From IMG/VR virus record IMGVR_UViG_3300025770_001492, positions 62,001 to 126,000 of that record: a DNA stretch of 64,000 nt. One strand, given 5' to 3'. Of this stretch, positions 12,401 to 61,830 are shown one piece after another (the stretch's first letter is position 1; each line of letters begins with the position of its first letter). The notes under the pieces are model-generated. The model was not told the origin of the DNA. It saw only the letters and a program-made list of their open reading frames with translations, and did not search any database. Both the position numbers and the translations under genes were made by a program.

Positions 12401-15400
12401 AACAAAGTCAAGAGCAGAACCGCCTGCATTCGGGGTAAACCCCCCTCCAAGACGGATGCTCCAAGGTTCTGCAACTCCTACATCTGTTGTAGAATCGTAA
12501 ATCCATATGTCTAAGTAATTACCCCTAGAGGGGTTAACTACGCTGTTACTACCATAATCAATCCAAATACCATGACCAAAATCATTTATTGCTGGAGATG
12601 GCCCTCCTACTCCCTGATGCCAAAGAGGCATGTTTTGATTAAAAGATGAGTATATTGATTTCGTTGGCAAGAACCAAATTTCTACACTCTTAGATGTATA
12701 GGGACCACCAGTGTTTATAAAATCGCTGTCTGGTATTAGAACTCTATCGGCGTCGATTGCACTAAGGTCAATTGTTGTATCTGTAGTGGCTTGAATTATA
12801 GGAGGAGACCCAAGATCGATAGGTCCTACATACTCTCCATCTAAAGAATCACCCTCTGTTCCAAGATTGTCCGATACTGTTCCAGAAGATTCATTGAATT
12901 TCCAGAATCCAACTGCGTCGGATGATGTTATCAAGTCGGACAATGTCAAAGGAAGAACTCTAATCCCCCCGCTGGCTATAAATTTCCTTTCAAGAGATGC
13001 CTCTCCAGAAAGTGTAATACCACCAGAAGATGTGTGTGATATTATTGGCAAAGCATCTGCAACCCCTGTGAGGGATATTCCACCAGAAGAAGTGTAGTCA
13101 AACGAAGAAGCAACTAAGTCGGCTTGGCCAGACATCGAAACTCCGCCCTCTCCATCCATTTGCCTTGTGACGTAAACATTAGATTCTCCACTTAAGGAGA
13201 CCCCACCTCTTGCTAACCAATCCCCCCTAATAGAAGAGTTTCCTGATATAGCCAAGCCGCCAGAAGGCTCAAAACTAAATGATGAAGAAGTTACGCCAGA
13301 CTGACCAGATAATGATACTCCACCTCCTGCAATGTAGAGACTGACATAAGCATCAGAGCCTCCGCCTATCGTGATCCCTCCAGAACCTGTAACAGACTGT
13401 TGCCATTTCGATTCCGTCGTAGATCTTAGTATCAGACCGCCAGAACCTTCTACTGAGGTATTTGTCATTCCAGCATCAGACTCGCCAGAAGTTATTACGC
13501 CACCACCTGATGTGAAACTTATTTCATATGGTTCATAACTTCCGCTAAGTGTAACTCCACCAGAACCTTCAACAAAATATTGTTCTTGCTCTTCGGAATC
13601 CCCGCTTAGTATCAGACCGCCAGAACCTTCAAAAATACGTGCTCCTGATATCGTGACAGATTCACCAGAAACTGTTGCCCTAACGCCAGTTGTGCGAAGC
13701 AAATCAGAACTGCCGCTTAGTGCAATGCCGCCAGAACCTTCAACAAAATATTGTTCTTGCTCTTCGGAATCCCCGCTTAGTATCAGACCACCAGAACCTT
13801 CTACTAAGTAGTAGCTTGACATCAAGTAGTCAGATTCACCAGAAACTGCTACCCCAACACCCGTTGTACGAAGCAAATCAGAACTGCCGCTTAGTGTAAT
13901 GCCTCCGTCAGATTCAGCAGGAATGGATAGGCCATATGGAAAATAAGTATACGACTGTCTAGTTTCTATGTCAGACTGAGATAAGACTATATTGTAAGAT
14001 GCGATGTATCCAATTCGGCCTTCAAAGAAGTTGCCAATACCAGAAACATCACCATCATGATATTTAGTTTGGCCTCTTACTCCGAAGTATCCAGTTGCCA
14101 CTGGAATGATAGACATGCTACCCACAGAAAGATCACTGCCAACTTCTGTACCATTTAAATAAAGTCTAAAAGATGTGCTGTCCAAGAAAGTTAAAACAAC
14201 ATGATATATCTCGCCCAACTCCAGATCATCAACATTAATGAAAGCCTGCCAAGAGTTAGATGTGTCCCACGCTCCAGCATACAAACTAGATCCATCTAAA
14301 TAGATATTGAACCCGTTTGCAGCATTACCTGCGGTGTATATGGCCCGTCTGCCACTTAAGGAATTTGGACTAACCCACAATTCAATGGACTTATCTCCAC
14401 TCGCTCTTAACTCGGTTCCGTCAGACCTCTCTACTCTGTCATCACCAGGAATTTTCTGAAAATCTCGCACAAGTGGAGACTCTGTAGGAATGAGTCCCTC
14501 TGACCAACGTATATTACCTTCGTGAATCCCATTCTCGGCACTACCAGAACTGCTTCGGTTTTTAGCCACGGTTCCAGAACCCTCGTCCAACGGCCAGAAT
14601 CCTGCGGATTCGGAAGCCATTAGTGTAAACAGACGAGGACTCCTTAGTGTCAAGCCGCCTGAAGCAATAATTTTCGGCGTAATGTCTACTTCGCCTGAAA
14701 TCGACACTCCTCCAGATCCTGTGACAAAAAGCTGCACTTCCTCTACGGCATCCCCACTTAGCACCAATCCACCAGAAGATACAAAACTTATCTTGTATGG
14801 TTCGTAGCTGCCACCTAGTGTGATTCCGCCTTCTGAAACGTGTCTGTAACCCGTTATTAAATGATCAGACTCTCCAGACAAGATAAATGGATTAGAAGAT
14901 CTGTAAGTTATTGAGGGCCAGAATCGGTTTGCTAGTGTCACAGCGGGTTCTCCGCCATCGGCCACCAGTCCTCCTGAAGGATTCCCATCCAGAATCATGT
15001 TGAAGTTATAAACTCCAGCAGAATAATGTCTTCTAACTTCCGTTGCCGATAAAGTTGCATTTTGCAGAGAAAGATGGTTTATTTTTCCATTAAAATAATT
15101 TCCAACCAAAAACCCATCATGGTATTCTACACCGGCTGTGGTGCCGCCAATGAAAGGGGCTTGAGTGTGTGACCGAAGCTGACCGCAACTTTCAGATCCA
15201 ATTTCTTCTCCATTCAAGTACCCTTTGAGTTGACCCCCTGTATTTGACAAGGTTGGATTATCGAATGTAAGCACAACATGATAGATCCCTCCTGCATCAA
15301 CAGGAGCGGATACAAATTTTTCCCATTGGCTCGCACCGGCACCACCATTGTTATATCCATAAACATAAAGAATTCCGTCAAGGATGTATATATTTAACCC

Positions 15401-16774
15401 TCTTGTCCCTCCACCCTGACAATATATTGTGCGTCTTCCATAAGTAGAATATGCTTGAAACCAAATTTCAACGCTTTTGTTCGGATAGCCACCGCTCGAC
15501 GTGCCCCCAGCAGCGAGTGGATTGTTGCCTATTAAATCATTGGCCGGAATTGACACATAGTCGTTTACTCCATCAAACTCAGCAGCGAAACCCCCTACTT
15601 CCTGAAGTATGCCACCCTCTCCAGTAGTCACAAAGTTTTTATATGTTCCATCAACTGCTGTGCCAATCGTTCCATAATTTTCAGCAACAGAAGCACCTGA
15701 CGATTCATCCAACTTCCAATATGCTATTGGTTGAGAACCAGATACAATGTCAACATAAGAGTCTTTTGATATAATCAAAGAACCTTGAGACATTGCTCTA
15801 AGTTCAGTGATTGAAGCAGCACTTGTTCCAGAAACTGACACCCCGCCCGATGCTGTGACGTACCTTTCGTCTGATTTGTCCAGAGCGGTTGATTCACCTG
15901 CGACAGAGATGCCACCAGAAGATACGCCGCCCCAAGCACTACTTTTAACTGACGACTGGCCCGATATTACAACGCCACCACTTGAGGTGTCAGATAAACT
16001 AAAGGATATTTCAGCCTGTCCTCCTATCGAAATCCCACCATTTACAGAATGACTTAATCTAAGATCGACATCTGCCGTGCCGCTAATCGTTTTTGGCCTC
16101 TCTTCTGCTAGTGTATCCGCCCAATAACTTAAATCAGATTGTAGAAGCAATCCTGATCCTGCAATTGTCACGACACCAGCATAATAGGCGTCGTTTTCTT
16201 TAACAATTCCGTCATTAAAACCATTATATTTTCCATCGCTGGAATCCGCCCACGGATGGTTTGATGCAGGTTGCCCAGCAGTCTCCATCGGAGACCCATC
16301 ATCTGATTGGTCTTCTGCAACTAAGACATTATCTACCCATACCCGAACCCTCGCTACTGGTTCGACTTGAAATTCCCACATTAAATCAAAATCTACATTC
16401 TGTGGCAGGGATGCAGTGGATATTTCAACTCTAGCGTAATTGTTTACATCGACCTCAGGGGTTCCTGGCCCGCCCGGGGGATATTTTCCATCTCCCATTC
16501 TGACAATCAATGTGCTTGATGAATTAAAGCCGCAATATCCACCTTTGGTATTCGACCCCATTTCAAAAATGCAACCGTATGGATTTTTTCCCGTTGGTAT
16601 TTTTATAGTTGCTTTGAATACAGAGTTTTGATTTGACCCCATGCTGGGAACAGCACCACCGGAATTGTAGTTATAGTCTCTGGTTATATTGGTGCCACTA
16701 GTGATCGATTCATCAGCAGATACAATAGGAGTCGGATCAAAATCAATGTCTGTTGCAAAACTGAAATCCGCCAT
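9482..16774 (-). CDS. giant (~2,430 aa) LamG/concanavalin-A-domain repeat protein, probably virion-associated
   Basis: Three YWKLDE/FWPLDE/FWKFNE LamG modules plus an N-terminal beta-sandwich, separated by dozens of SGG-x-x-SG repeats; Cys-rich C-terminal region; AGGAAGGAAG before ATG at 16774 (MADFSF). Confidence 0.75.
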   Translation of the reverse strand: MADFSFATDIDFDPTPIVSADESITSGTNITRDYNYNSGGAVPSMGSNQNSVFKATIKIPTGKNPYGCIFEMGSNTKGGYCGFNSSSTLIVRMGDGKYPPGGPGTPEVDVNNYARVEISTASLPQNVDFDLMWEFQVEPVARVRVWVDNVLVAEDQSDDGSPMETAGQPASNHPWADSSDGKYNGFNDGIVKENDAYYAGVVTIAGSGLLLQSDLSYWADTLAEERPKTISGTADVDLRLSHSVNGGISIGGQAEISFSLSDTSSGGVVISGQSSVKSSAWGGVSSGGISVAGESTALDKSDERYVTASGGVSVSGTSAASITELRAMSQGSLIISKDSYVDIVSGSQPIAYWKLDESSGASVAENYGTIGTAVDGTYKNFVTTGEGGILQEVGGFAAEFDGVNDYVSIPANDLIGNNPLAAGGTSSGGYPNKSVEIWFQAYSTYGRRTIYCQGGGTRGLNIYILDGILYVYGYNNGGAGASQWEKFVSAPVDAGGIYHVVLTFDNPTLSNTGGQLKGYLNGEEIGSESCGQLRSHTQAPFIGGTTAGVEYHDGFLVGNYFNGKINHLSLQNATLSATEVRRHYSAGVYNFNMILDGNPSGGLVADGGEPAVTLANRFWPSITYRSSNPFILSGESDHLITGYRHVSEGGITLGGSYEPYKISFVSSGGLVLSGDAVEEVQLFVTGSGGVSISGEVDITPKIIASGGLTLRSPRLFTLMASESAGFWPLDEGSGTVAKNRSSSGSAENGIHEGNIRWSEGLIPTESPLVRDFQKIPGDDRVERSDGTELRASGDKSIELWVSPNSLSGRRAIYTAGNAANGFNIYLDGSSLYAGAWDTSNSWQAFINVDDLELGEIYHVVLTFLDSTSFRLYLNGTEVGSDLSVGSMSIIPVATGYFGVRGQTKYHDGDVSGIGNFFEGRIGYIASYNIVLSQSDIETRQSYTYFPYGLSIPAESDGGITLSGSSDLLRTTGVGVAVSGESDYLMSSYYLVEGSGGLILSGDSEEQEQYFVEGSGGIALSGSSDLLRTTGVRATVSGESVTISGARIFEGSGGLILSGDSEEQEQYFVEGSGGVTLSGSYEPYEISFTSGGGVITSGESDAGMTNTSVEGSGGLILRSTTESKWQQSVTGSGGITIGGGSDAYVSLYIAGGGVSLSGQSGVTSSSFSFEPSGGLAISGNSSIRGDWLARGGVSLSGESNVYVTRQMDGEGGVSMSGQADLVASSFDYTSSGGISLTGVADALPIISHTSSGGITLSGEASLERKFIASGGIRVLPLTLSDLITSSDAVGFWKFNESSGTVSDNLGTEGDSLDGEYVGPIDLGSPPIIQATTDTTIDLSAIDADRVLIPDSDFINTGGPYTSKSVEIWFLPTKSIYSSFNQNMPLWHQGVGGPSPAINDFGHGIWIDYGSNSVVNPSRGNYLDIWIYDSTTDVGVAEPWSIRLGGGFTPNAGGSALDFVANWDKPHQVVITFESNWPSTGATLKAYLNGELIGTQTTTKLARLYDDRGACTGCNPSGDRNLVGGHLGYVTQSGTASPKFFDGQLGYTAYWNSVLSTEDVSAHYNSGFYFYSMSIPAESDGGITLSGSSDLLRTTGVGVSVAGESDAGMTNISVEGSGGLVLAGDSIDQREYSAEASGGIILSGESETSLIIPVVPSGGILLSGQSGVTSNSFAFESSGGLVVSGSSSVRGDWVARGGVQLSGSANVLLTKRFTSSGGLSVSGESDYLISGFNYVSSGGVIISGDSNEGVKDYKYESSGGLSLSGFAESKWLIAFESSGGLLITENIFNKTVVVVDYIFTQDFQWAVQGEVYSFQNFQWDVGESPLMFYRVEGDCQQPDCENATFDDGETCTQGKRFFQTVVARSVSDVCEKLKQAYFSYPMIWPVKSIKRFSRPANLNVIRSQEAQGINHDCLELVEEEFCQIPECAEFCLSEQPQVFMGMNVTIQDTFFVYESVGGLFASATSGEVGFYSYESTGGIVASGSITTESSSWIYESNGEVVLLGNSDISSEFYAYIGSGSIGVSGTIANESSSYTFVASSGIFLEGSSVQEVALEFIPLFPLISTSGEASVSTGGFNYISSGGITLSGEANNLKNNHSYEGDGGLIISGDSEDVSSYVTYAGSGGLSASGEVLISRSIESTGDISVSGSSGFIIHYSYESLGGIGLSGNPVVISSSWSASGSGSMSMGGSAGVFSSFLGTLTAYIGAEAELTEEAASFPGIITGDTLTIDDGTVTTICGCDPLPLTLSLKQNLNKSTLLRSFSTLNDITFPDILTLRYDSLNVSWRENIQYTGIGIDGSSQERWTFLFEFTCNNNNFISEQTQTPNWKLSLYIKRKNLVSLEDYDARLLYTFSRDTVCVSDKLNFEFNIDVDSKVSYVSGNSPYVVDYEVFHDSMGFFVGGWQTDPELKIQISESVLSSGVRKVDIISLFPV
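13560..13789. repeat. 59-bp identical direct repeat in the giant gene
   Basis: ccagaaccttcaacaaaatattgttcttgctcttcggaatccccgcttagtatcagacc at 13560-13618 and 13731-13789; further near-identical repeats at ~12003/13695/13869 and 11921/13433. Confidence 0.9.
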
Positions 16775-16776
16775 GG

Positions 16777-16911
16777 TCAGTCTTCCTTCCTGTGTGAAGC
16801 GTCCTTGAACAAGTCGCCAATTGAAGACCAAGATTGCGCAGGCGATACCACATCAGACTTGCCACTTGTCTGATAACTCCCGCTATCTGCTGTGTAAACG
16901 AAATCAGCCAT
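16777..16911 (-). CDS. 44-aa ORF resembling the start and linker repeats of the downstream giant protein
   Basis: MADFVYTADSGSYQTSGKSDVVSPAQSWSSIGDLFKDASHRKED; not in the ORF track; same MADF start as the giant gene. Confidence 0.55.
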   Translation of the reverse strand: MADFVYTADSGSYQTSGKSDVVSPAQSWSSIGDLFKDASHRKED

Positions 16912-45029: not shown

Positions 45030-47762
45030 TTATATTCCCACTATTGTAAAGCCTTCATCGTTTATATCTTTCAAAAGCTTTTCCTCTGCCTTGGAAGGCT
45101 CATGCTTTATTTCAACTTGTTCCGGTTTAGCCATGACGACGAGTCTGCCATCTGCTGCTTTTTCAGGTAGCTCCGAACGATTTCGTTTGGTCGGACTCTG
45201 AAAAACGTGACTGCTAAATCCGGGATCAGGTCGATTGATCCTCATTCTAAGAAAGTTACCTTGGCGGAATTCTCCGTCCCAATGCTCTATTTCTTCCTTA
45301 AATCTAACAAAATCATCTTCCCACATCGTCACCAGTCTTGTGTTAAAATTTTCATCTTGAACAGTAAAAACATAATAAGGATTTCCCTTTTTAGAAAGCC
45401 TCTCCTGTAATGATGACTCCTTTTTAGGAAGCCCTTTTTTATCCAAGCTTACTATCTGACATTCAATTGGTGCCCAAAGCAAGGTTGATTCCTCATCAAA
45501 ACGGTCAAAAGTCATTCCGCCTTTATAGTCAGGGCTGAACTCTATAGGATGCTGCCATGCGAATCCATAATACATCGATTCTGCAATGCCTAGCAACTCG
45601 TTGTAAACATTTTCAAATCCCGTGTCGATTTCTCCAGAAGGCATAAAATCAGCAAGAGTGATTGGCAGATCAGAATCTTTCTTCTTCTTCAAAGATTCGA
45701 CGTTTCTCTTGTACTTCTTTCCAATCTTTAAAATGTCTTCCAAATCATCTTTTAAGTGTTGGAAATTAAAATTCTCAAATTCAAATTCAGAAATGAAGAA
45801 ATCTTTCTTAGGCAAATCTAATAAACCGCTTTTCAGAATCTCTTTTAAAAAGTTTTCAGAGGAACCATCGCCCCCATTCTTGTAAAGAACGTAGTCCATC
45901 TCTTCTACAATTTTTAATTTAGATTTATCCGCACGCTTATCTCTGTCCTGACGCTTTTTTGTTTCATGTTTAAAGTACTCCCAAAATTCATGGAGCACCT
46001 TTCTGTCTTCCTCTTCTCCGAAGCAATTTAAGGCAATCAAAGGCTTTAGAACTTTTGAATCTGTGCCAAATCTTTGCAAGAAGTCATCAAATCCACTGTA
46101 TGGCTGTCCTTCCTCGATCTTATGAGAGACATCTTCCCCTATTCCCTTAATGTCAGAGAAGCCCATATAGACCAAATCATCAACAATTTCCCAGTTCCAA
46201 CCTGATTTGTTGATGTCTACCCTTTTTAGCTCTACACCATCTTTCTCTGCCTCAAGTTTGTAATCTTTAATTTTACCTGACTGGGTTTCGCATTGCAAAG
46301 TTCCACAATAAAACTCAATTGGAAAATGTGCCTTCAAGTAAAGAAGCCTAGACGAAATATAAGAATATGCGTAAGCGTGGCTTGCGTTAAATCCGTACTC
46401 TGAAAAAGCTTCCACTTGATCCCACAGTTCTTCAACTTCTTTCTTTTCCCAGCCGAGATTTGATTGCCCACGACCAACGAACTGCTCTTTATATCGAGCA
46501 AACTCCTTAACCTTTTTCTTACTCATTGCTTTTCTGACTTTTTCGCAATGAATAAGCGGAATGTCTCCCACGACATTCAAAATTTTCATAACCTGTTCTT
46601 GGTAAACCATAACTCCATATGTTCTGCCAAGAATTGGCCTGAGAATCGGATGCAAATCTCCATCCATGTCTGGAACTGGATTACTAACAGGCTCTTGTCC
46701 TCTTTTTCGCCTGATGTACGTTTTATCCATGTCCATATTAAGAGGGCCGGGTCTGTACAGAGCAGAATAAGCAGGTAAATCATCAAACCCTGTTACACCG
46801 CCTTTTTTAACCATCTCACGCATTCCATTAGAATCAAACTGGAAAATGCACTTTAGCTTTCCTTCATCCGCTAAAGCAATTGCTTTAGGGTCATTCAGAT
46901 AGGCAGTATCAGACCAATCGTCATCCGTGCCATCCAAAGCAGATATTGTCTTTATGTGAGGATGATTCCTTTTGACTAACTCGCTGATGGTTACAATTCT
47001 TTTCAAATCCGTAACAACCAAGAGGTCAAATTTAATCAAACCCAAAGGGCCTAAGTCGGTTCCAGACAGCCCTTCCACAAATGCAGAAACATAAGCGTCG
47101 TCTTTGCCCTTAACCAGTGGAACCAGTTTATTGATTCTTTGATCAGAAATGATTAGCCCACCAGCATGCATTCCCATTCCACGATTGCGATTTAAAAGCC
47201 TACGGGCAGCGTCTGCAACATCTGGATTGTCTTCGCAATATTTGCCCAATTTCTCAAATTGCTCTAAAGCTTTATCGAAAGTAAGAGTCTTGCCATCATT
47301 ATCTTTCAAGCCAAGCTGAGTGGTTAGTCCTATAATTTCATTTCGATCCTTATCATGGACCTTGGCCATATCAATTAAAGAACTTTTTATTCCGTAAGTT
47401 GTGTAGTTGCCAATTGCGCAAACATTTTCTTTTCCAAACTCTTTCGGTGCCCACTCAACCTTTAGATAATCACGAACTTGAGGTAAGTAATCTATATCAA
47501 TATCTGGAAACTCGCCCTGTACAGAAACTGGTGGCAAATTTATGTCGAAATCATCGACCAAGTCTAAAAGATAAGCAATTAAAAGATTGTTTTCATTGTT
47601 TTCAAATTTAGCTTTTTTAGAATGAAGATCTACAAAATACTCATGTTCCGCCTGAGCATCAAGCTCTTTAAGCTCCTCTCTTAATCGCTCTTTATATTCA
47701 GAAGAATCTAAGCCCTTTTTGGACATTCCTTCCACGCAAAGTTTTAGTAGTTGATCTCTCAT
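45030..47762 (-). CDS. dnaE: DNA polymerase III alpha, C-terminal polypeptide (catalytic palm, fingers, HhH, OB)
   Basis: FPDIDIDY, HAGG, KFDLL, FQFDS, ALYRPGP, YQEQVM, YGFNASHA and KAHFP; no PHP, no GPGRGS, no intein. Confidence 0.95.
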   Translation of the reverse strand: MRDQLLKLCVEGMSKKGLDSSEYKERLREELKELDAQAEHEYFVDLHSKKAKFENNENNLLIAYLLDLVDDFDINLPPVSVQGEFPDIDIDYLPQVRDYLKVEWAPKEFGKENVCAIGNYTTYGIKSSLIDMAKVHDKDRNEIIGLTTQLGLKDNDGKTLTFDKALEQFEKLGKYCEDNPDVADAARRLLNRNRGMGMHAGGLIISDQRINKLVPLVKGKDDAYVSAFVEGLSGTDLGPLGLIKFDLLVVTDLKRIVTISELVKRNHPHIKTISALDGTDDDWSDTAYLNDPKAIALADEGKLKCIFQFDSNGMREMVKKGGVTGFDDLPAYSALYRPGPLNMDMDKTYIRRKRGQEPVSNPVPDMDGDLHPILRPILGRTYGVMVYQEQVMKILNVVGDIPLIHCEKVRKAMSKKKVKEFARYKEQFVGRGQSNLGWEKKEVEELWDQVEAFSEYGFNASHAYAYSYISSRLLYLKAHFPIEFYCGTLQCETQSGKIKDYKLEAEKDGVELKRVDINKSGWNWEIVDDLVYMGFSDIKGIGEDVSHKIEEGQPYSGFDDFLQRFGTDSKVLKPLIALNCFGEEEDRKVLHEFWEYFKHETKKRQDRDKRADKSKLKIVEEMDYVLYKNGGDGSSENFLKEILKSGLLDLPKKDFFISEFEFENFNFQHLKDDLEDILKIGKKYKRNVESLKKKKDSDLPITLADFMPSGEIDTGFENVYNELLGIAESMYYGFAWQHPIEFSPDYKGGMTFDRFDEESTLLWAPIECQIVSLDKKGLPKKESSLQERLSKKGNPYYVFTVQDENFNTRLVTMWEDDFVRFKEEIEHWDGEFRQGNFLRMRINRPDPGFSSHVFQSPTKRNRSELPEKAADGRLVVMAKPEQVEIKHEPSKAEEKLLKDINDEGFTIVGI

Positions 47763-49577: not shown

Positions 49578-49581
49578 TCAG

Positions 49582-49937
49582 TGGACCGGACGGGAGTCGA
49601 ACCCGTGTGTTGCGCTACCTATTCAAAAGCGTCTACCTGTATAGTTTGATGTTTGAGTTTCGCATCATTAAACCACAACAAACAAAGGTTTAAATCAACT
49701 ATCAAACAACGAGTCTTAGTTCAAAAGTAGTTTGATTTGCTTTGAACGCATCCAGTATTGCGGCAAGTTGTCAAACGTCACTGGCAGACCTTTGAAACTT
49801 GGGCTACTTATAATTAAGCAGCCATAGCGAAATTAGTTTTGTCAACTAAATTTTTAATCGGATTTTTAAGGAGCCTTCCGATCAACTCCTACAGGCAACT
49901 CAAGAACTCAACAGCCAATCGATACCATTTCCAGCCC
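49582..49937 (-). ncRNA. ssrA: tmRNA, tag (A)DKTNFAMAA
   Basis: Acceptor stem GGGCTGG/CCGGTCC-A with G3.U70; T arm ACGGG-TTCGACT-CCCGT; tag frame 49843-49814 GAC AAA ACT AAT TTC GCT ATG GCT GCT TAA after TTTAGTT; CCA not encoded. Confidence 0.95.
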
Positions 49938-52259: not shown

Positions 52260-53640
52260 TTATTGATCTGACCAAACACGATCAGTTCTTCCTAGAAAAG
52301 GCGCAGACTCAATTGCTTCGTCCATGGGAATGGGATCAATATTCGAAAAAGATGGTTCTCCCGAAAATCTAAACTTAATTTGTTTTCCGCCACGAGCAGG
52401 ACTCAAAAATCTAGAAAACAATAGACCATGCTTGATTGGATCGACATCCGTTATCCCAAGACAGTAGCAACTAAGAGCACCAACTGCCGAGCCTCTTCCG
52501 GGACCGACTGCCGAAGAACCGCTGGAGCCATATGTCTCAAAGTACCATCTTCTGGCTTCATCGGTCATCATTTTTTGGATCAAAAAGTAAGAGGAAAAGC
52601 CTTTTTGGCAAATTAAAGAATATTCTTCTTCTATCCTATCCAAATATTCTTTATTCCTAGGAATTTTCCTCTTAACAACCCCTTCTATGATTGATTCCTT
52701 AAACTTAATGTCAGATTCGCTAAATGCAGGAAGTTTGATAGTTCTATCAAGCTTTACGCCTTTTGCTTTTTCGCAAAGGGCAACGGTATTTAACTTGGCC
52801 TGCTTAAGTATTTCGTAATCTATTACATCCTTGTAATCACTTTCCCACTTCGCATTTATCTCTTCTTCTGACTTCATCCATAAGTTTGAATCTTGCAATT
52901 CGAACATATCAGCCATGTCATTCTGTGCCAACGCTTGTTCGATTTGCTTCATGGTTCTTCCTGTTTGAACCATAATCATCTTTCTCTGCATTTCGCTGTC
53001 TTCTTTGAGACAGTAGTGGCAATCATTTGTAACAATAATTGGTAAATTATATTTTTGGCTGGCTTTTATTATAAACTCATCATAAGGCTTTTGTTTCGAG
53101 AAGTCTAAAAGCATTATTTCTAGATAGAAGTTTTCTCCGAACATGGCCATATATTTTTCGACCATCTCCATAGCTGGACCTTCGCCACCCACATCAAAAG
53201 CTTGTCCAATTTCACTGTTATAACAGCAAGAAGTGAATATAATTCCTTCTTTATATTGCATGAGGACTTCGTGATTGACTCTGGGTTTCCTGTAGAAACC
53301 CCTCGTCCAACCCCAAGATGAAAGAGTAACCAGATTGCTGTAGCCTGTTTCATTATAGGCTATGGCAAGCAGATGATTCGATTTTCTTAACTTGGCTTGC
53401 TCTTCTTGCGTACCCAGACCTCTATTGAATTCCGTCATAGAAGGAATAGTGGTCGTGTCAGGCTGCAACTGATTTACATAAAGCTCACAAGCAAATATAG
53501 GCTCTAGGTTGTTTTCATCGCATGCTCTAATCTGGCGTGGGACAGAACCCATCGCACCATGATCTGATATGCATAAAAACTTTTGATTTACCTGTTTAGA
53601 ATATTTTCCATATTCTTCAACAGTGGCGTATCCATCTAAG
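52260..53640 (-). CDS. dnaE: DNA polymerase III alpha, N-terminal polypeptide, exon 2 (PHP domain and first palm segment)
   Basis: LDGY, SDHG, ACELY, NHL, NDCHY, GPGRGS and FSRFLSPAR, then a short unrelated tail and stop. Confidence 0.93.
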
Positions 53641-53863
53641 CACAAACTCCACAGTTTCTTGTGGTGTAGACTATATCATCACCCCGAAGGGTGTCGGACG
53701 CTCTGGCCTGTAATTAAGAGGACTGAACCTCTCAGGTAGTCGTTGCACGTTCCAAAAGTGTACTTCTGGCTTCGCTCAGGATTGCCCTCGACTTTACGTT
53801 AGGGTTTCCCTGAATTCATCCGATTTGCATGCAAGATTTCTCTCACATGGCCCCAGTTAGTTA
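53641..53863 (-). ncRNA. group I self-splicing intron, 223 nt, no endonuclease ORF
   Basis: P1 GCCU|UA..UGGGGC with U.G at the 5' splice site; P2 with GAAA loop; P3 UCGGAUG/CGUCCGA; P4 UUCAGG/CCUGAG; P7 GACUA/UAGUC; P8 with UUCG loop; P9; terminal omega-G. Removal restores HTDFSLLDGY. Confidence 0.93.
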
Positions 53864-53919
53864 AGGCTGAAATCAGTATGTCTGTGTAGATGTTCAAAAC
53901 CTACAATCAGGTCTTTCAT
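53864..53919 (-). CDS. dnaE: DNA polymerase III alpha, N-terminal polypeptide, exon 1
   Basis: AAGGAG-N6-ATG; MKDLIVGFEHLHRHTDFS+CT carrying the PHP HxH motif. Confidence 0.9.
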
Positions 53920-53979: not shown

Positions 53980-54504
53980 TTAATCTTTCCATTGTTTCCA
54001 TTTGCCCGTCTTTTCATTTTTAAAGTAAAAAGCAGCTTTTGGATCTTGTGTGTCTACCTTGAAGAAAGGCTCAGATCCTTTTCTGTTTCTGCACCACTTG
54101 TTTTCAACAGGCGACTCCAGCATGGCTTCACGATTTACAATGAACAGCCTTTTGTAATCGCCCCCGATTATCATCATATGAGTGGCATGCTCTTCTGCTT
54201 TGTCCCTTTTGCGGTAAGGGAAGTCCATTGTATGAAATTTGAAAGGAACGTCAAACCATTTTGTTCCCCAATCTTGCTTTATCTCGGCCTCAATTCTCCA
54301 TTCACCGATACTCTTTTTTGAATGCGTTCCAGCAACATCCCATATCTTTTTAAATTTTCCTCTGCTCTCGTCTAAGTTCTCTGATATTTTTTTGAATCCA
54401 CGTTGTTGTAAAAATTCCGTTGCCACTAGCTTTGCAGGTCCATCATACTTTTCGTACCTATCTTTGCAAAACCTTATATCATTAGGTTTTGGCATCAAAT
54501 ACAT
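53980..54504 (-). CDS. PD-(D/E)XK nuclease-like protein
   Basis: WDVAG...IEAEIKQDW pattern. Confidence 0.55.
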   Translation of the reverse strand: MYLMPKPNDIRFCKDRYEKYDGPAKLVATEFLQQRGFKKISENLDESRGKFKKIWDVAGTHSKKSIGEWRIEAEIKQDWGTKWFDVPFKFHTMDFPYRKRDKAEEHATHMMIIGGDYKRLFIVNREAMLESPVENKWCRNRKGSEPFFKVDTQDPKAAFYFKNEKTGKWKQWKD

Positions 54505-55208
54505 TCCTTAAACTTAGAGCATCTCCTTATCTTTGCTATAGTTTCGAAACCTTTGGTTCCCAAAATCCCATCAGCAAAGCCGTAGTACACTGCCTCTTCC
54601 GCAGACATGTACCAATCACTCTTATCCTTGAGCTTTTTATCTATCCAAGATATAATTCGTGATTCTGTGTATTCTTTCTCTAAAAAGAACTCTCCAATCT
54701 TACAGCGTCTAGCAAATATTTGCAACATACGTTTCATATATTTATTATTCATTTCCACAGCGGAGTTTACAGCTATGGAGTTATCATGCAAAGCTATAGA
54801 ACCATGGTGAATCATGAATTCACAATTAGGCGTTAAAACTCTTTTATCAGCCGCTTGCAACAAAATTCCACTCATAGAAGAAGCTTGTGCATAAGTAACA
54901 AACGTGACTGATGAGTTTGCAAATCTAATTGCATCAAACATCGCTAACCCATCGCACCAACTTCCGCCAGTAGAATGCATGTGTACCAGTACGTTTTCAG
55001 AATTCTGATTCTCTAAAACAGATAAATTTTTATTAAATCTAACTGCCATTCTGTAATCTACACCTGGTTCGGAATCGTCAGACAAAGGGCTTAAAGAACT
55101 GTGCAGAAAGAGTTCTCTTGTATAGTGATTGATATTGTGAGAGTGAACATCGCTGAGAAGCTGTTCAATTTCCGACTTTTTACGCAAACTATTTTTCGTT
55201 GTAGCCAT
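54495..55208 (-). CDS. clpP: ClpP-like ATP-dependent protease proteolytic subunit
   Basis: STGG, ASSM (Ser), MIHHG (His) and DWYMSAEEAVYYGFADGI (Asp); GGAGG before ATG at 55208. Confidence 0.88.
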   Translation of the reverse strand: MATTKNSLRKKSEIEQLLSDVHSHNINHYTRELFLHSSLSPLSDDSEPGVDYRMAVRFNKNLSVLENQNSENVLVHMHSTGGSWCDGLAMFDAIRFANSSVTFVTYAQASSMSGILLQAADKRVLTPNCEFMIHHGSIALHDNSIAVNSAVEMNNKYMKRMLQIFARRCKIGEFFLEKEYTESRIISWIDKKLKDKSDWYMSAEEAVYYGFADGILGTKGFETIAKIRRCSKFKECI

Positions 55209-55319
55209 CGCAACCTCCAAAAAAGTCTTTATTTAATTCACTATTATATATCTGATTTATATTCTATTTATCTTTTTTAACTTCCTTCCTAGGAAAATAT
55301 TAAAACTATTAACTTCAAA

Positions 55320-55360
55320 AATGTTCATAAGTCCTTTTATTTAAAGAACTTATGAACATT
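55320..55360. other. 13-bp inverted repeat between spoVR and clpP
   Basis: aatgttcataagt (55320-55332) / acttatgaacatt (55348-55360). Confidence 0.5.
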
Positions 55361-55458
55361 ATGATCTTTAGAGATCCCATTCTCAGCCTCAGATTGTTTA
55401 TCACTCATTGCTTACATCCCTTTTGACTTTCTTTAATGCTTTTAGCAGGTCGAACACC

Positions 55459-57051
55459 CTATAGCGATTCGTATTCTTCTCTGGTCATGACGGCCACATC
55501 GCCATCCTGTGTTCCTACGCACCAATAAACTATTTCTTCGTCATCGGAACCAGTAGTAGACAACACCACATCATTCCCCCAAATGAATCTTAAAGACTTT
55601 AAAGTGGGGATTAAATCCGGCTCATACAAGCCTCTGCCATCGGAGTTGTGCTCTAGCAACATGACTCCCTTGCCTTGGTGGTTTGGATCTACTAGATATA
55701 TCTCTGGCAAGCCTCCATTCAAATGTCTTTTGATCAACTTACTTTTGATTGACTTGTGGTCACGATTTTCAATCTTGTACTCGCCATTTGGATATCTTTT
55801 CCATTCAAAAAACTCATATTTATTACAAAAATCTTCTGTGAAAAACTCCATCAAAGCTGTTAGGTCATTATATTGCTTTCGAACATCAAATATTTTATCT
55901 CTGCCTAGACCTAGATTCTTATCCCAATTTTCTTTTTCTACTATATTGCTACATTCTTCGTACTCTTGGCCAAACTTGCCTTTATTCCACCTCTCTTCGA
56001 TATCCAACAAAAGACAGAATCCTAGCTTATAAGGATTCATCGAATACTTGCCTCCGAGAACGCCCATCTTGTGAGCGGAGTATTCAACGATGCCGCAGTC
56101 TTCGCCTGTCTGCCCTAAGCCACAAAGTCCCATTTCACACATTACTGTATAATCTGTAAAGCTTGCCCATCCTTCGTTGAGCATTTTTGTAACTCTTTGA
56201 GGCGAAAAATATAAACTTTCCTCATACATCATGGAAAGAATGTCTGACTGCCAAGGTTTCAAAGGAGCACTATCTCTTAAAAATCCCATAATGTCTTTAG
56301 TTGGATTTTTAAATATTCCAATTTGCTGTGCGGCCTCATCTCGACTAATCTTTTCTTTTTGGCCATCAATCCATCTTTTAGGATTGATATAAGGCTCCAT
56401 GTAATCACGGTCAGAATTTACACCTAACCTTTTAGGCTGCTTGTAGGTTCTCTCATCTTGTATGACACGATCTTTTACAACCTTTTCTTCCCAAGCCTTC
56501 GCTGAGTCTATCAAAGTTTCAATCGAGCAGCAGTGGTCGATAAATTCTGTAACTTTCTCCACGCCCCAACGCTGCATGTATTTTCGGATGCGGGTTCCAT
56601 GATTAGCAAGTTGGTTCATCATATTTTGCGAGGTGGGCGCAAAATATATGTTGTTCTTAAAAAAGTCATTGTGGCCTAAAGCGTGAGCAATAACCGTAAC
56701 ATTATCCACCAGCGTATTTGAATCCAAACAGTAGATGTAACAAGGATTGGTATTAATAACCATTTCATAAATTCGGTGCATCCCATGCTCGTAACCTTTT
56801 TGAAGGCTTTCGTATTCCATTCCCCATTTCCAGTGTGGGTAACGAACTGGAAATCCTCCGTAAGATGCAACTTCACTTATTTCATCGTAAGTCAGCATCT
56901 GAACAACGGTGGGATAAAAATCGCAGCCGAAGTCTTTAACTGCCTTGAATATGTCAGGCATAATCTTCTTAAGCTCACTAGGAAGCTGAACGCCTGGCAC
57001 AGTGCTGTCACCGAGAAGCAGAGAAGAGCCTCTGAAAAATTTACTAGACAT
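55459..57051 (-). CDS. spoVR: SpoVR/YcgB family protein
   Basis: GFPVRYPHWKWG, IYEMVIN..PC, VIAHALGHNDFFKN, TKMLNEGWASF and NPYKLGF. Confidence 0.95.
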   Translation of the reverse strand: MSSKFFRGSSLLLGDSTVPGVQLPSELKKIMPDIFKAVKDFGCDFYPTVVQMLTYDEISEVASYGGFPVRYPHWKWGMEYESLQKGYEHGMHRIYEMVINTNPCYIYCLDSNTLVDNVTVIAHALGHNDFFKNNIYFAPTSQNMMNQLANHGTRIRKYMQRWGVEKVTEFIDHCCSIETLIDSAKAWEEKVVKDRVIQDERTYKQPKRLGVNSDRDYMEPYINPKRWIDGQKEKISRDEAAQQIGIFKNPTKDIMGFLRDSAPLKPWQSDILSMMYEESLYFSPQRVTKMLNEGWASFTDYTVMCEMGLCGLGQTGEDCGIVEYSAHKMGVLGGKYSMNPYKLGFCLLLDIEERWNKGKFGQEYEECSNIVEKENWDKNLGLGRDKIFDVRKQYNDLTALMEFFTEDFCNKYEFFEWKRYPNGEYKIENRDHKSIKSKLIKRHLNGGLPEIYLVDPNHQGKGVMLLEHNSDGRGLYEPDLIPTLKSLRFIWGNDVVLSTTGSDDEEIVYWCVGTQDGDVAVMTREEYESL

Positions 57052-57056
57052 ATTTT

Positions 57057-58289
57057 TTATCCTTGAATCTTCTTTTCTATTAAACCCGGTTTTCCTAATA
57101 AATCAATAATTGCTTCTCTGATTTTTACGTCTCTTTCTTCCTCTGAAATTTCAGAAGCAGGCCCCCAACTAGATACATTGTCTTCTGAGTCAGACATTAT
57201 ATCTGTGGTCACAACGTTAGAAGGAGGGCTTTCCGACATTAAAACATTCTCATCTACATATTCTTTCAAGCTTCCCTTGTATCTCCAAGGCAAAATTTGA
57301 GCTATTCCTATAAAGTTGACAATATCTTCTGTGAATTGATCTTTTATTATTTTTGAAAAGACTTCGTTGTCATTGTCCCAGTTTTCCCCGTCAGTAAAAT
57401 AAATTACGTACACATTCCACTTTTCAGGAGGAAACCTATTTTCCATCTGCTTTGAAATTAATTTCAAAGCAGATGAACATGTTGTTCCACCACCATATCG
57501 GTATTTATAGAATCTTTTCTCATCAACTTCCGAAGCTTCTGTGTCGTGCCAAATATAACATCTTTCGACACGTTTATAAAACTGCCTTATCCATAAATCT
57601 ATCCACCAAGACATATCGCTAACAATATCACACTTTGTCTGGTCCATTGAAGCAGATCCATCACGAGCGAAAAATATAACAGCATTGCTCGATGGAACTT
57701 TTATTTCTTTATATCGCCTATACCTGCGATCACTGTTTATCGGCATGATCATTTTTACAGGCTCCTTCATGCCGGGAATGGCATGGAGTTTTTCCAATTC
57801 TCCAGAAGCAGCCATTCTCTTCATGGCTTGCTGCATAGTTCTTCGATTGTGCCTTAAGGATTCTGGACCTTGTAATGAAATATCATTGTATTTAATTTTA
57901 ATTTCATCATAAGTTTGATTTGGCTTTGGCTTTAAATCAGGAAGTTCTAATTCATCCTGAAGAAATTTTAAAACATCTTCCAAGTCTATGGATATAGTAA
58001 CGCCATCAGATTGTCCTTGTCCTGCCTTGCCCTTGCCTTTTCCATCGCCTGGATCATCTCTCCCAACTACGTCTCCAGGTTTTCCACCGCCACGTCCGAC
58101 TCCCTCGCCACTATTCCCATAAACAATATGTGGTATGTCTATTTTTGGGATTGTGATGTTTATCTTTTTCCCATCTCCACGAGTTCTAAATATAGATCCG
58201 TTTTTAATCCTCTTTTGAAGATCTTTTCTTATTCGGCCAGAATAAACATCTCTAAATCTTTTGTGGTCTTCTTCAATACGTCTTGGCAT
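57057..58289 (-). CDS. yeaH: YeaH/YhbH (DUF444) vWA-like protein
   Basis: Gly-rich GRGGGKPGD segment, MIDAS-like DGSASM, GGGT..SSA and FTDGENW. Confidence 0.93.
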   Translation of the reverse strand: MPRRIEEDHKRFRDVYSGRIRKDLQKRIKNGSIFRTRGDGKKINITIPKIDIPHIVYGNSGEGVGRGGGKPGDVVGRDDPGDGKGKGKAGQGQSDGVTISIDLEDVLKFLQDELELPDLKPKPNQTYDEIKIKYNDISLQGPESLRHNRRTMQQAMKRMAASGELEKLHAIPGMKEPVKMIMPINSDRRYRRYKEIKVPSSNAVIFFARDGSASMDQTKCDIVSDMSWWIDLWIRQFYKRVERCYIWHDTEASEVDEKRFYKYRYGGGTTCSSALKLISKQMENRFPPEKWNVYVIYFTDGENWDNDNEVFSKIIKDQFTEDIVNFIGIAQILPWRYKGSLKEYVDENVLMSESPPSNVVTTDIMSDSEDNVSSWGPASEISEEERDVKIREAIIDLLGKPGLIEKKIQG

Positions 58290-58310
58290 TACTGAACCCT
58301 TTAGTAGTCT

Positions 58311-58351
58311 AAAATAAAGAGCCACCCCCACAAAGAAGTGAAGAGTGGCTC
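58311..58351 (-). terminator. terminator-like hairpin between prkA and yeaH
   Basis: GAGCCACTCTTCAC-TTCTTT-GTGGGGGTGGCTC followed by TTTATTTT. Confidence 0.55.
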
Positions 58352-58364
58352 ATCCTCTTTATAT

Positions 58365-60479
58365 CTAGGAGTCGTTAGCTACATCGCCTCTTGCAAATAT
58401 AGAACCAACATAATCAAGAACATCCGTTGCGGATTTTTCGTTATATCCATGATGCTTAATCAAGCGGGACTTAATTGCATCAATTTTTTCTTGAACGTCT
58501 GGATCAACTACAGAGGCACCAAGAGAATTTAAAGCAGAAAGCTTTATGTGATCTCTAGTGTCTTCGAATAGTTTGGTTTGCAAAGCCTTTTGCAACTGTG
58601 GGTTACTATCCCACTTAAAGGTTTTGCTTTCATGGGCAAGATTTCCAATGAAAGCTGCCAAACTTCTGCGGAAGTCGTCAGAGCCAACTTCTGGAACATC
58701 AATTTTTTCTTCAATCGATCTCATCAACTGCTCATCTGGCAACTGTTCCTGTCCTGTGTACGGATTGGTCACTTTTGCCTTTTTAATGTATGCCATCACG
58801 TTATCGACATAATTAGTACAAAGTCTAATAATGGCATTCTCATCACCAACAAGTGCTTTTTGAACTTCTGTTTTCAAAATCTCATCTAGCTCTTTCATAG
58901 CAAAATCAACACAAGTGTTAAACCTACTTGCGTCCTCTTGATTAGAGATCAAAGAAGATCCGTCAAGTCCTTCACGAATTTCATTCAGCACCATGAATGG
59001 ATTGATGTAATCATGGTGAGAACTCAAACAGTTAGAAATCTTGTCCTGAACATATCGAGCAGAGACTCCGCCAGACATCCCTTCATTTGGATATTTATCT
59101 CGCATTTCTTTTACTGAATCTTCAGTCCAGCCAGGCATTGATTTTCCATCATAAAGCTTTGACTTCTCTACCAAAGAAATTTTGCCATCTTTATCATCTT
59201 GCAATCTTGTCAAAACCGCCCAAAGAGCGGCAATCTCTAAAGTATGAGGAGCAACATGCTGAGGAACTTTACTTTTGCCGTAATCGTTCTGATAAACTTT
59301 AAGTTCATCAGAAAGACTTAAAAGATATGGAACATCGATCTTCACAGTTCTATCACGCAAGGCTTCCATGCTTTGATTGTTCTTGAGTTTTTCATACTCA
59401 GGATTATTTGTATGCCCAATTAAGACTTCATCGACCCCAATCTGAGCGAACTTTTTCGGCTTTATGCTTCGCTCTTGAGACGCTCCCAAAAGATCGTACA
59501 AAAACTCTTGAGCAAGCTTCAGCATCTCAATAAATTCAACAACACCACGATTCCCCACACAAAACTCACCATCAAAGTTGAAAGCTCTAGGATCACTATC
59601 AGATCCAAAGTGAGGAAGCTTCGCATAATTGATGTCACCAGTTAGCTCAGTAGCATCTTGATTCTTTTCGTCTTTAGGTTGAAAAGTTGCAATCCCGCAT
59701 CTGTCTGCTTCAGAATAAACTTTTCTCACAACAACAATGTGCTCGTCAACAACCTTTCTCCAATCACCCTTGTGTATTTTCAAAAGTTCATCCATAAACT
59801 TTTTACATCTCGGATTAAGCTCCCCGTCGCAACGGAGTTCGTATGTTTGCTCTCCTTGAGGGTGATTCCCAAACTCTGCCTTTACTTCATTCAAATCTTT
59901 GAGAAGTTCTGCTCGTACTTTCATGGGCACTAACTTAATGGGATCGTCATGCATCGGACAATCATCAGAATCATTTGTATAAATTCCATCGGACCCTGTT
60001 GGAAGGTTTTTCCAACGGTATGTATACCAAGCACCTTGGTCTGTTTGAGAGTATTCTTCCATGCCTCTTTTGATAAGTCGGCAAATTGTAGACTTAGACG
60101 AACCTACTGGCCCGTGGAGAAGAAGAATTCTTTTTTCGGTTCCGTACCAACCGGCAGCACCCCGAATAAATTTAACCAATTCATGTAGAGTATTGTCCAA
60201 ACCATAAATTGGAATTTCATCATTATCAAAGAAGTTATAATGGATATAGGTTTTTCGATACTTTTTAAACTCAGAAGTTCCAGCATTCATGATCATATCA
60301 TAAACTCGCTGGTAAGCTGATCGGACTAAGCCTGGACTTTTATAACAACTATCAATGTACTCAGAAAAAGTCATTTCCTGATTAAGTGTTTGAAATTTAC
60401 CAGTATCAAAAAATCCAGCAAGCTTGTCTAGCTTAGAAGTGCCTTCATGCTCTTCCTTGTTGAAATTTTCATTTTCCAT
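58365..60479 (-). CDS. prkA: PrkA/YeaG family AAA+ serine kinase/ATPase
   Basis: LLHGPVGSSKST Walker A, DEKNQDATELTG, NRGVVEFIEM, HTNNPEY and ALRDRT. Confidence 0.96.
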   Translation of the reverse strand: MENENFNKEEHEGTSKLDKLAGFFDTGKFQTLNQEMTFSEYIDSCYKSPGLVRSAYQRVYDMIMNAGTSEFKKYRKTYIHYNFFDNDEIPIYGLDNTLHELVKFIRGAAGWYGTEKRILLLHGPVGSSKSTICRLIKRGMEEYSQTDQGAWYTYRWKNLPTGSDGIYTNDSDDCPMHDDPIKLVPMKVRAELLKDLNEVKAEFGNHPQGEQTYELRCDGELNPRCKKFMDELLKIHKGDWRKVVDEHIVVVRKVYSEADRCGIATFQPKDEKNQDATELTGDINYAKLPHFGSDSDPRAFNFDGEFCVGNRGVVEFIEMLKLAQEFLYDLLGASQERSIKPKKFAQIGVDEVLIGHTNNPEYEKLKNNQSMEALRDRTVKIDVPYLLSLSDELKVYQNDYGKSKVPQHVAPHTLEIAALWAVLTRLQDDKDGKISLVEKSKLYDGKSMPGWTEDSVKEMRDKYPNEGMSGGVSARYVQDKISNCLSSHHDYINPFMVLNEIREGLDGSSLISNQEDASRFNTCVDFAMKELDEILKTEVQKALVGDENAIIRLCTNYVDNVMAYIKKAKVTNPYTGQEQLPDEQLMRSIEEKIDVPEVGSDDFRRSLAAFIGNLAHESKTFKWDSNPQLQKALQTKLFEDTRDHIKLSALNSLGASVVDPDVQEKIDAIKSRLIKHHGYNEKSATDVLDYVGSIFARGDVANDS

Positions 60480-61299: not shown

Positions 61300-61830
61300 C
61301 TAAAAGGTAGCCTTGTATAATTTTTCTGCCTTTTCCCACAGCTTAATTATCCTAGATTCATTAACGCTCATTTCGGAACTTATAAATCTTCGAGATATAG
61401 CACCAAAGGGTAGTACATTTTTATTTATGCACTCAGCTAAAACAAAGTTACCAACTCCATCTAAATAACTTACGAATGTAGATTGTTCATTAGATTTAGA
61501 AGAAGTAATTTTATCCCCTAAATAAGTGTCAACGGCCATAACGTCAGAATTAATAAATAAAGTTTTTTCAAAATGTCTACTAAATTTCGTTTTAGCAACA
61601 TTTAAATAATTTTGATCATTATATTGAGAAAAATTAATTTTACATCTTTTTGCCCAATTTGAAACAATATCGCTTTTAATAAAGTCTCCTCTTGCAAGTA
61701 TGAAAACCTTTGCGTCTGGTAAATTCTTAACAATTGAATACCATGAGCAAAACGCCATCCATGGCTCAAATGGGTCTTTATCAATATTAATAACAACAGC
61801 TAAGTTGTCGCCAGTTTTAGAGATAGTCAT
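61300..61830 (-). CDS. hypothetical protein, weak GT-A-like pattern
   Basis: SWYSIVKNLPD...LFINSDVM. Confidence 0.5.
   Translation of the reverse strand: MTISKTGDNLAVVINIDKDPFEPWMAFCSWYSIVKNLPDAKVFILARGDFIKSDIVSNWAKRCKINFSQYNDQNYLNVAKTKFSRHFEKTLFINSDVMAVDTYLGDKITSSKSNEQSTFVSYLDGVGNFVLAECINKNVLPFGAISRRFISSEMSVNESRIIKLWEKAEKLYKATF

Follow-up and report, generated by a model that had tools for sequence, protein, structure and literature searches.

A PrkA-YeaH-SpoVR gene block in marine huge phages and its separable ClpP-like neighbour

Gene content of the locus

We examined a 64,000-nucleotide (nt) stretch of viral DNA (hereafter the window), comprising bases 62001-126000 of the 245.5-kb IMG/VR record IMGVR_UViG_3300025770_001492, which is rated 49% complete, and within it a run of four genes encoding an AAA+ ATPase of the PrkA/YeaG family, a YeaH/YhbH protein, a SpoVR/YcgB protein and a ClpP-like serine peptidase (Table 1). 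A preliminary description of this DNA had regarded the first three as a complete prkA-yeaH-spoVR trio of phage origin, had reported intact motifs in all four genes, and had suggested that the trio acts as a substrate selector or unfoldase for the ClpP of the phage. The four open reading frames (ORFs) and their coordinates were confirmed on the minus strand, with two start codons corrected; their motifs can be read directly from the translations, and the completeness of the trio is borne out by its Pfam families and by motifs kept in all lineages compared below. The four genes do share a strand, as had been pointed out, but this co-orientation carries little weight because 43 of the 47 window ORFs of at least 150 amino acids (aa) likewise lie on the minus strand. 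GC skew is negative across the whole window.

Table 1 Features of the locus and its surroundings, in window coordinates
Feature	Position	Strand	Basis
FmdB-like zinc-ribbon protein, 122 aa	60601-60969	-	PF09723 (Zn_ribbon_8), TIGR02605
PrkA/YeaG-family AAA+ ATPase with PrkA C-terminal domain, 704 aa	58365-60479	-	PF08298 and PF06798
GC-rich hairpin followed by UUUAUUUU, prkA-yeaH spacer	58319-58351	-	RNA fold
YeaH/YhbH (DUF444) protein, vWA-like, MIDAS DxSxS, 410 aa	57057-58289	-	PF04285, 235 bits
SpoVR/YcgB-family protein, 530 aa	55459-57051	-	PF04293, 356 bits
Perfect 18-bp hairpin followed by U-run, spoVR-clpP spacer	55320-55360	-	RNA fold
ClpP-family (S14) serine peptidase, phage-specific subfamily, 237 aa	54495-55208	-	PF00574, 81 bits
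orf174, lineage-specific	53980-54504	-	10-nt overlap with the clpP-like gene at its stop codon
dnaE (Pol III alpha), N-terminal half	52260-53919	-	PHP and DNA_pol3_alpha domains
Transfer-messenger RNA (tmRNA) gene, tag DKTNFAMAA (ssrA-like degron ending in AA)	49579-49937	-	Rfam RF00023, 112 bits; ARAGORN

PrkA relatives are encoded on at least 141 IMG/VR contigs. We compared the locus with the best 80 of these, many of them 200-570 kb long, by tblastn and hidden Markov model (HMM) searches; their PrkA sequences are 61-100% identical to that of the window, and dereplication at 97% PrkA identity left 58 lineages, 46 of which are informative for the presence or absence of the ClpP-like gene. The window PrkA matches PF08298 with 268 bits (residues 36-430) and PF06798 with 236 bits (residues 437-690), both against a cut-off of 25, and has the Walker A motif GPVGSSKST (123-131) and the Walker B motif EFIE (315-318), which are kept as GPVGS[SA]KS[TS] and EFIE in 58 of 58 lineages. 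The Pfam matches of YeaH and SpoVR each stand against a cut-off of 27. YeaH has its DGSAS at residues 224-228, and D.S.S, GGGT and [TS]DG are kept in 52/52 lineages; SpoVR has HALGH at residues 123-127, with H..GH and NEG.AS both kept in 41/41. All three proteins score far below the NCBIfam equivalog cut-offs (PrkA, 201 bits versus 576 for NF011999; YeaH, 306 versus 388 for NF003711; SpoVR, 172 versus 679 for NF008737), so that the window PrkA is a divergent family member rather than a YeaG equivalog, and equivalog level is not reached by YeaH or SpoVR either.

The AlphaFold model of PrkA (predicted local distance difference test score, pLDDT, 80.5) has a generic AAA+ core, which resembles Lon, ClpB, ClpA and ClpX to the same degree as NorQ and CbbQ, two MoxR-type ATPases that work with vWA partners. 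Structure searches with this model placed the core in no single clade, HCLR-type and MoxR-type proteins scoring alike (Z 10-11), gave no clear match for the C-terminal domain, and found no solved PrkA or YeaG structure in the PDB copy searched. The most conserved stretch of PrkA (residues 261-309) was modelled at low confidence, as a loop before Walker B.

The start of yeaH is most likely ATG 58289, which has an AAAGGG ribosome-binding site, rather than the listed GTG 58331, and that of the clpP-like gene ATG 55208, with a GGAGG site, rather than the listed TTG 55220. A gap of 75 nt separates prkA from yeaH and holds a hairpin (-22.7 kcal/mol, z = -3.0) that was also a hit in a scan for terminator-like elements and may be an attenuator. 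Between yeaH and spoVR the gap is 5 nt with no feature inside; since spoVR starts only these 5 nt past the yeaH stop, the two are tightly coupled. The trio had been described as lying directly upstream of clpP, and the genes are indeed adjacent, but the spoVR-clpP gap is 250 nt and contains an 18-bp hairpin with a U-run (-24.8 kcal/mol, z = -5.9; none of 200 shuffles reached this value) that looks like an intrinsic terminator. The clpP-like gene is therefore the least tightly joined of the four.

The ClpP-like protein has Ser115, His138 and Asp202 at the positions of S97, H122 and D171 of Escherichia coli ClpP, and across an alignment of 30 ClpP-like sequences S115 and H138 never vary and D202 occurs in 28. 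Its model shows a confident ClpP fold including the handle region (pLDDT 89.7), and the best PDB matches of the model in Foldseek are cellular ClpPs (E about 1e-13, target template-modelling score about 0.8). The best PHROG matches of the protein are head-maturation proteases (phrog_94, E 4e-26), and it stays below every NCBIfam ClpP cut-off (TIGR00493, 48 bits versus 308.6; NF009205, 64 versus 228) as well as below that of NF045542, Clp_rel_HeadMat (60.5 bits versus 120). The N-terminal 60 residues have a conserved motif of their own (H26, R35, H40) where ClpP has axial loops, and the pocket positions, aligned by hand, are partly kept, with a nearly invariant His in place of E. coli Y62.

Conservation of the block and distribution of the ClpP-like gene

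The source of the window is a fragment of a cosmopolitan marine huge phage, which agrees with the phage origin assumed at the outset, and its clade consists of marine and aquatic phages with genomes of about 500-600 kb. A megablast search of the 6-kb stretch against GenBank phages gave no match; the nearest GenBank entry is LR756511, from an uncultured huge phage of 595 kb whose PrkA is 66% identical. Many studies between 2012 and 2025 have yielded seawater or marine DNA runs that contain the same 6-kb stretch nearly unchanged, and such runs number at least 18. Small contigs with 100% identity over PrkA, YeaH, SpoVR and ClpP were also found in two metatranscriptome runs, in one of which a small contig spans the PrkA/YeaH junction, and we take these as weak evidence of expression since DNA carry-over is possible.

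Within this clade the trio forms a core block just upstream of dnaE, in the co-linear order orf176, orf108, zinc-ribbon gene, PrkA, YeaH, SpoVR, ClpP (where present) and DnaE over the 80 loci. YeaH and SpoVR follow PrkA, adjacent and co-oriented, in every related locus of sufficient length. The zinc-ribbon gene is found directly upstream of PrkA in most of the 80 loci (tblastn) and also in contigs retrieved with the ClpP-like sequence, and its product may be a regulator or a fourth component of the module; in one deep branch the gene has moved about 7 kb upstream and to the other strand. PADLOC gave no defence-system match among the eight proteins scanned.

The phage trio has the same three Pfam families, gene order and motifs as the bacterial modules yeaG-yeaH-ycgB of E. 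coli and prkA-yhbH-spoVR of Bacillus subtilis. Among 80 bacterial yeaG loci YeaH is linked in 78 and SpoVR in 63, and the linkage is also seen in distant viral loci. The phage version differs in being virus-encoded, in its conserved upstream zinc-ribbon gene, in its low equivalog scores, in the inteins carried by SpoVR of relatives, and in a ClpP-like neighbour that occurs in half of the phage lineages and in none of the bacterial loci examined. In the sequences compared, identity of the window PrkA to gammaproteobacterial-type, RsoM2USA and Thermus-phage PrkA is only 25-34%. A phage-borne trio is itself already on record for Thermus phages and for the Ralstonia jumbo phage RsoM2USA (PMC8504454). 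These phages (phiYS40, TMA, YS40_Isch and Lalka8 of Thermus, and RsoM2USA) have the same trio families, with PrkA only 26-31% identical to that of the window, and in the Thermus phages the order is YeaH-SpoVR-PrkA beside the portal and large terminase (TerL) genes, unlike in the huge-phage clade.

SpoVR of the relatives is often a single ORF of 940-1370 aa with one or two LAGLIDADG inteins (Intein_splicing and LAGLIDADG_3 domains), as in L016:13289-16123, L022:13796-16711, L074:14059-16962 and L028:13289-17395; no intein is present in the SpoVR of the window. The inteins occupy two sites, one just before HxxxH (about residues 100-122 in window numbering) and one just after NEGWAS (about 297-305), and this position beside both conserved motifs is typical of a functionally constrained gene. 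To our knowledge SpoVR has not been known as an intein host. The prkA-yeaH spacer is an insertion hot spot in relatives, where 0.5-2.7 kb has been inserted (L268:4128-4703, L269:2785-4383, L012, L035 and L056), the inserts including a Methyltransf_24 gene and a weakly Mom-like gene. The length of the spoVR-dnaE slot ranges from 45 nt to 5.3 kb across relatives.

The ClpP-like gene is present in 28 of the 80 loci, always co-oriented and always between SpoVR and dnaE, which corresponds to presence in 23 of the 46 informative lineages and absence in the other 23. The adjacency noted in the preliminary description thus recurs and is no one-off, but it is missing in half of the lineages, and no ClpP was found in any of the 80 bacterial yeaG loci (1.47 Mb of flanking sequence). 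On a maximum-likelihood tree of PrkA the ClpP state changes 9-11 times, at least 7 of these changes being forced by well-supported branches, and ClpP is present in the deepest branch; the ClpP tree recovers the groups of the PrkA tree. From the state changes and the matching trees we conclude that the ClpP-like gene was ancestral at this site, has been inherited vertically, and has been lost repeatedly (at least 7 times). The gene order of the window recurs around two homologues that were retrieved independently with the ClpP-like sequence and lie on contigs of 634 and 546 kb.

Other genomes and more distant loci show the trio apart from the peptidase. The 572-kb genome G001, which has direct terminal repeats and is 100% complete, has the trio and no PF00574 match anywhere. 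In LR756511 a search with the window ClpP protein was empty, and a Pfam search gave a different ClpP, 235 kb from the trio. In the Thermus phages, RsoM2USA, LR756502 and LR756504, ClpP was absent or more than 20 kb off. Among 85 distant viral PrkA loci with flanks of 8-10 kb, ClpP was seen beside one sequence (L119 and L120), where it lies 6 kb upstream on the opposite strand.

The dissociation also holds in the reverse direction. A reciprocal scan with the ClpP alignment returned 532 viral contigs, the best 80 of which were taken and gave 67 informative loci, 31 with SpoVR directly upstream of the ClpP-like gene and 36 without PrkA, YeaH or SpoVR within 8 kb. About 30 of these 36 share the order ERCC4 nuclease, ClpP-like gene, T4-type TerL and come from phages of about 150 kb, with the fuller order sigma-70-like gene, sugar epimerase, ERCC4 nuclease, ClpP-like gene, TerL, a 674-aa protein and a 505-aa protein. 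In these ClpP-TerL loci (L299-L348, for example L303:7709-8374) the ClpP-like protein is 40-48% identical to that of the window and its gene overlaps the ERCC4 gene, and the contigs examined, one of them 130 kb long and 86% complete, contained no PrkA, S77 prohead protease or ClpX-type ATPase. In the ~150-kb phages the ClpP-like protein is probably the head-maturation protease. As the trio and the ClpP-like gene dissociate in both directions, they are probably not one machine.

The ClpP-like protein of the window shares with the ClpP-related head-maturation proteases (PHROG 94, NF045542) its best PHROG match, the ClpP fold and the Ser-His-Asp triad, and its 40-48% identical relatives lie directly upstream of TerL in phages without S77. 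It differs from them in that its gene sits outside the head and packaging module, between spoVR and dnaE, is dispensable (it is absent from the complete relative G001), scores below the family cut-off, and belongs to a clade that has an S77 protease. This T4 gp21-type prohead protease was found in G001, G003 and LR756511, G003 having both it and the ClpP-like gene, and the ClpP-like protein is therefore not the main prohead protease of the clade. Redundancy with S77 would probably explain why the gene is dispensable and has been lost repeatedly. Judged by its profile matches and its relatives, it is probably a phage-lineage ClpP-family peptidase of maturation or processing type.

Roles of the trio and of the ClpP-like peptidase

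In bacteria the homologues of the trio have been tied to protein turnover and to stress. PrkA of B. subtilis is an ATP-binding and ATP-hydrolysing protein whose degradation of casein depends on ATP (PMC9512850), and PrkA of Bacillus anthracis is required for sporulation and osmotic stress resistance (PMC13001217). A report of October 2026 (PMC13684143) showed that the protein degradation induced by starvation in E. coli, which is global and largely nonspecific and supplies amino acids and ATP, requires YeaG, now named SpdA. Because YeaG/PrkA is linked in these reports (PMC9512850 and PMC13684143) to proteolysis and starvation, manipulation of starvation-type protein turnover in the host appears the most likely role of the phage trio. 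The trio would work as in bacteria, with the AAA+ ATPase PrkA pairing with its vWA/MIDAS partner YeaH and with SpoVR, and would drive the infected cell towards protein turnover of the starvation type or towards stress physiology; the turnover so induced would release amino acids and energy to sustain a long and costly infection. The preliminary description had offered, as a second option, that the trio overrides host stress or dormancy, and this would be compatible with such a role.

Taking these parts together, we lean towards the explanation that two independent things lie side by side at this locus: a functional trio, being a complete phage copy of the bacterial module under purifying selection, that manipulates host turnover, and a separate ClpP-like gene whose adjacency to SpoVR reflects conserved synteny in a co-linear core region rather than operon-level coupling. 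Several observations weigh against it. In 23 lineages the ClpP-like gene directly follows SpoVR in the same orientation, the median distance between them being about 143 nt, and in L038 the SpoVR stop and ClpP start codons even overlap; partners in an operon would look the same. The assignment of the ClpP-like protein to head maturation comes from profile ranking and from the context of relatives, with no structural module at this locus and a score below the NF045542 cut-off. The function proposed for the trio is drawn solely from bacterial homologues, on which reports conflict: in contrast to the B. subtilis protein (PMC9512850), B. anthracis PrkA had negligible activity as a protease or kinase when assayed in vitro (PMC13001217). 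The placement of the Thermus-phage trio between portal and terminase genes hints at a morphogenetic role instead of manipulation of the host. Finally, the peptidase that executes YeaG-dependent proteolysis is not named in the passages of PMC13684143 searched, and an executor of the ClpP family is therefore possible, for which ClpP-less phages could use the ClpP of the host.

A second explanation, the chief alternative for the ClpP-like gene, leaves the trio aside and makes the ClpP-like protein the partner of a phage ClpX, or of host ClpX or ClpA, in degrading proteins tagged by the phage tmRNA (FAMAA); we regard it as possible but unlikely. The preliminary description had stated that no other AAA+ partner for ClpP is in the window, which is true of the window itself, but the same contig encodes a 429-aa ClpX outside it (G000:C1:1659-2948, minus strand; L105:1195-2484) with a C4 zinc finger, a GYVG pore loop, an RKH loop and the IGF loop SIGFG. 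The tmRNA gene lies 4.6 kb downstream of the ClpP-like gene, and the window genome shares with canonical ClpXP and ssrA the ClpP fold and conserved triad, a ClpX with an IGF loop and a tag ending in AA. The modelled fold, complete with handle region and closest to cellular ClpPs in the PDB, would also suit such a peptidase. Unlike in the canonical system, however, clpX and the clpP-like gene are unlinked, 114 kb apart, the N-terminal region and the pocket residue at Y62 differ, and the scores fall far under the NCBIfam ClpP cut-offs, including that of TIGR00493. ClpX and tmRNA also persist in relatives without the ClpP-like gene and so do not need it, and the same ClpP subfamily occurs in the ~150-kb phages without ClpX on the contig. 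The presence of a tmRNA gene no more than 10 kb from PrkA does not follow that of ClpP (3/23 lineages with ClpP versus 5/35 without), and the ClpX homologues of ClpP-less G001 and of LR756511 keep the same loops; since G001 keeps them, the phage ClpX probably docks host ClpP in at least some lineages. A complex prediction with the phage ClpX (residues 65-429) and two ClpP-like copies scored 0.02 and counts neither way. Patchy ClpP and ClpX genes in jumbo phages had already been noted (PMC7824862), and the Lon protease domain (PF05362) was not found in five clade genomes.

The main alternative for the trio, that it is instead an assembly chaperone of MoxR-vWA style for phage structures or large complexes and no manipulator of the host, seems to us decidedly improbable. 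The pairing of an AAA+ protein with a vWA/MIDAS protein does parallel NorQ-NorD and CbbQ-CbbO, PrkA has NorQ and CbbQ among its top hits in the structure search, the Thermus-phage trio lies between portal or minor head genes and TerL, and a role as virion-assembly chaperones has been suggested for MoxR-vWA pairs of jumbo phages (PMC7824862). In the huge phages, however, the trio lies in a replication and auxiliary region beside dnaE and not among structural genes, and starvation, stress and sporulation are the settings in which the bacterial homologues act.

The first proposal of the preliminary description, in which PrkA, with YeaH and SpoVR as adaptors, would be the AAA+ unfoldase or selector feeding the adjacent ClpP-like peptidase in a new phage ATP-dependent protease, found no support and appears very unlikely: the ancestral, vertically inherited adjacency in 23 of 46 lineages, the same order on the ClpP-retrieved contigs, the link of YeaG/PrkA to proteolysis with its executing peptidase unnamed in the passages searched, and a modelled AAA+ core resembling those of Lon, ClpA and ClpX would fit it, but the trio and the ClpP-like gene dissociate both ways, the genome has its own ClpX with SIGFG, a hairpin with U-run and a separate ribosome-binding site precede the ClpP-like gene, its N-terminus is unlike the axial loops by which ClpP contacts ATPases, and PrkA lacks a docking loop of the [ILV]G[FL] type. 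Its one tripeptide of this kind, YGL (92-94), is not special to ClpP-bearing lineages, because Gly93 is nearly invariant in the PrkA alignments, Thermus phages and RsoM2USA included. The related idea that a PrkA/YeaG-YeaH-SpoVR machine has the ClpP-like protein as its executing peptidase, with host ClpP in its place in ClpP-less lineages, seems to us equally hard to credit; if true, it would reveal the missing protease of YeaG (SpdA)-dependent bulk degradation in E. coli, and giant phages would impose an autophagy-like recycling of the host proteome.

The module of YeaG/PrkA, YeaH and YcgB/SpoVR is among the most conserved bacterial stress modules of unexplained mechanism. The presence of an intact trio as a core block that tolerates inteins suggests that viruses exploit this pathway, plausibly by recycling host protein in long infections. 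The phage trio offers compact, divergent sequences for structural work and complementation tests, and once its ClpP neighbour is recognized as separable, experimental work need not start from a false operon. PrkA and SpoVR are unmentioned in a jumbo-phage review and in marine and aquatic jumbo-phage surveys, and in the literature searched we did not find the size and conservation of the trio block in this clade, the half-conserved ClpP neighbour or the SpoVR inteins.

Neighbouring genes and other features of the window

Downstream of the trio, dnaE is interrupted by a group I intron at about 53643-53862 (Rfam RF00028, 90.7 bits over 53648-53873), which separates exon 1 (53863-53919) from exon 2 (52260-53642). 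Exon 1 consists of 19 codons from ATG 53919 and encodes MKDLIVGFEHLHRHTDFSL, a PHP motif, and the frame resumes at about 53642 with CLDGYATVEEY; since the intron splits off this exon, the TTG start listed for the N-terminal part of DnaE is false. Two pieces separated by 4.5 kb (45030-47762 and 52260-53645, both on the minus strand) encode Pol III alpha, the N-terminal piece ending just past FLSPAR and the C-terminal piece starting before the catalytic PDIDIDY, with unrelated ORFs and the tmRNA gene between them. In the ClpP-retrieved relatives the N-terminal parts of DnaE are likewise short (440-480 aa); the region is contiguous in LR756511. The tmRNA tags of related phages end in AMAA, AVAA, ALAA, RLAA or SLAA, and their genes often lie no more than 10-15 kb from the trio and dnaE region.

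Between dnaE and the ClpP-like gene, orf174 matched no Pfam, PHROG, NCBIfam or PADLOC family, tblastn over the related loci found no homologue in other lineages, and its Atlas matches are viral hypothetical proteins only. At the other end of the block, orf176 (61300-61830) had weak NCBIfam matches to Shiga toxin B models; their scores of 17-19 bits against cut-offs of 165-203 were judged to be chance. A marginal tRNA at 139-201 on the minus strand was reported by Rfam (31.7 bits, gathering score 29) and not called by ARAGORN. A 2449-aa ORF at 9482-16831 on the minus strand has no PHROG family at E <= 1e-5, and the G+C content of this region is 0.41-0.45, compared with about 0.37 elsewhere.

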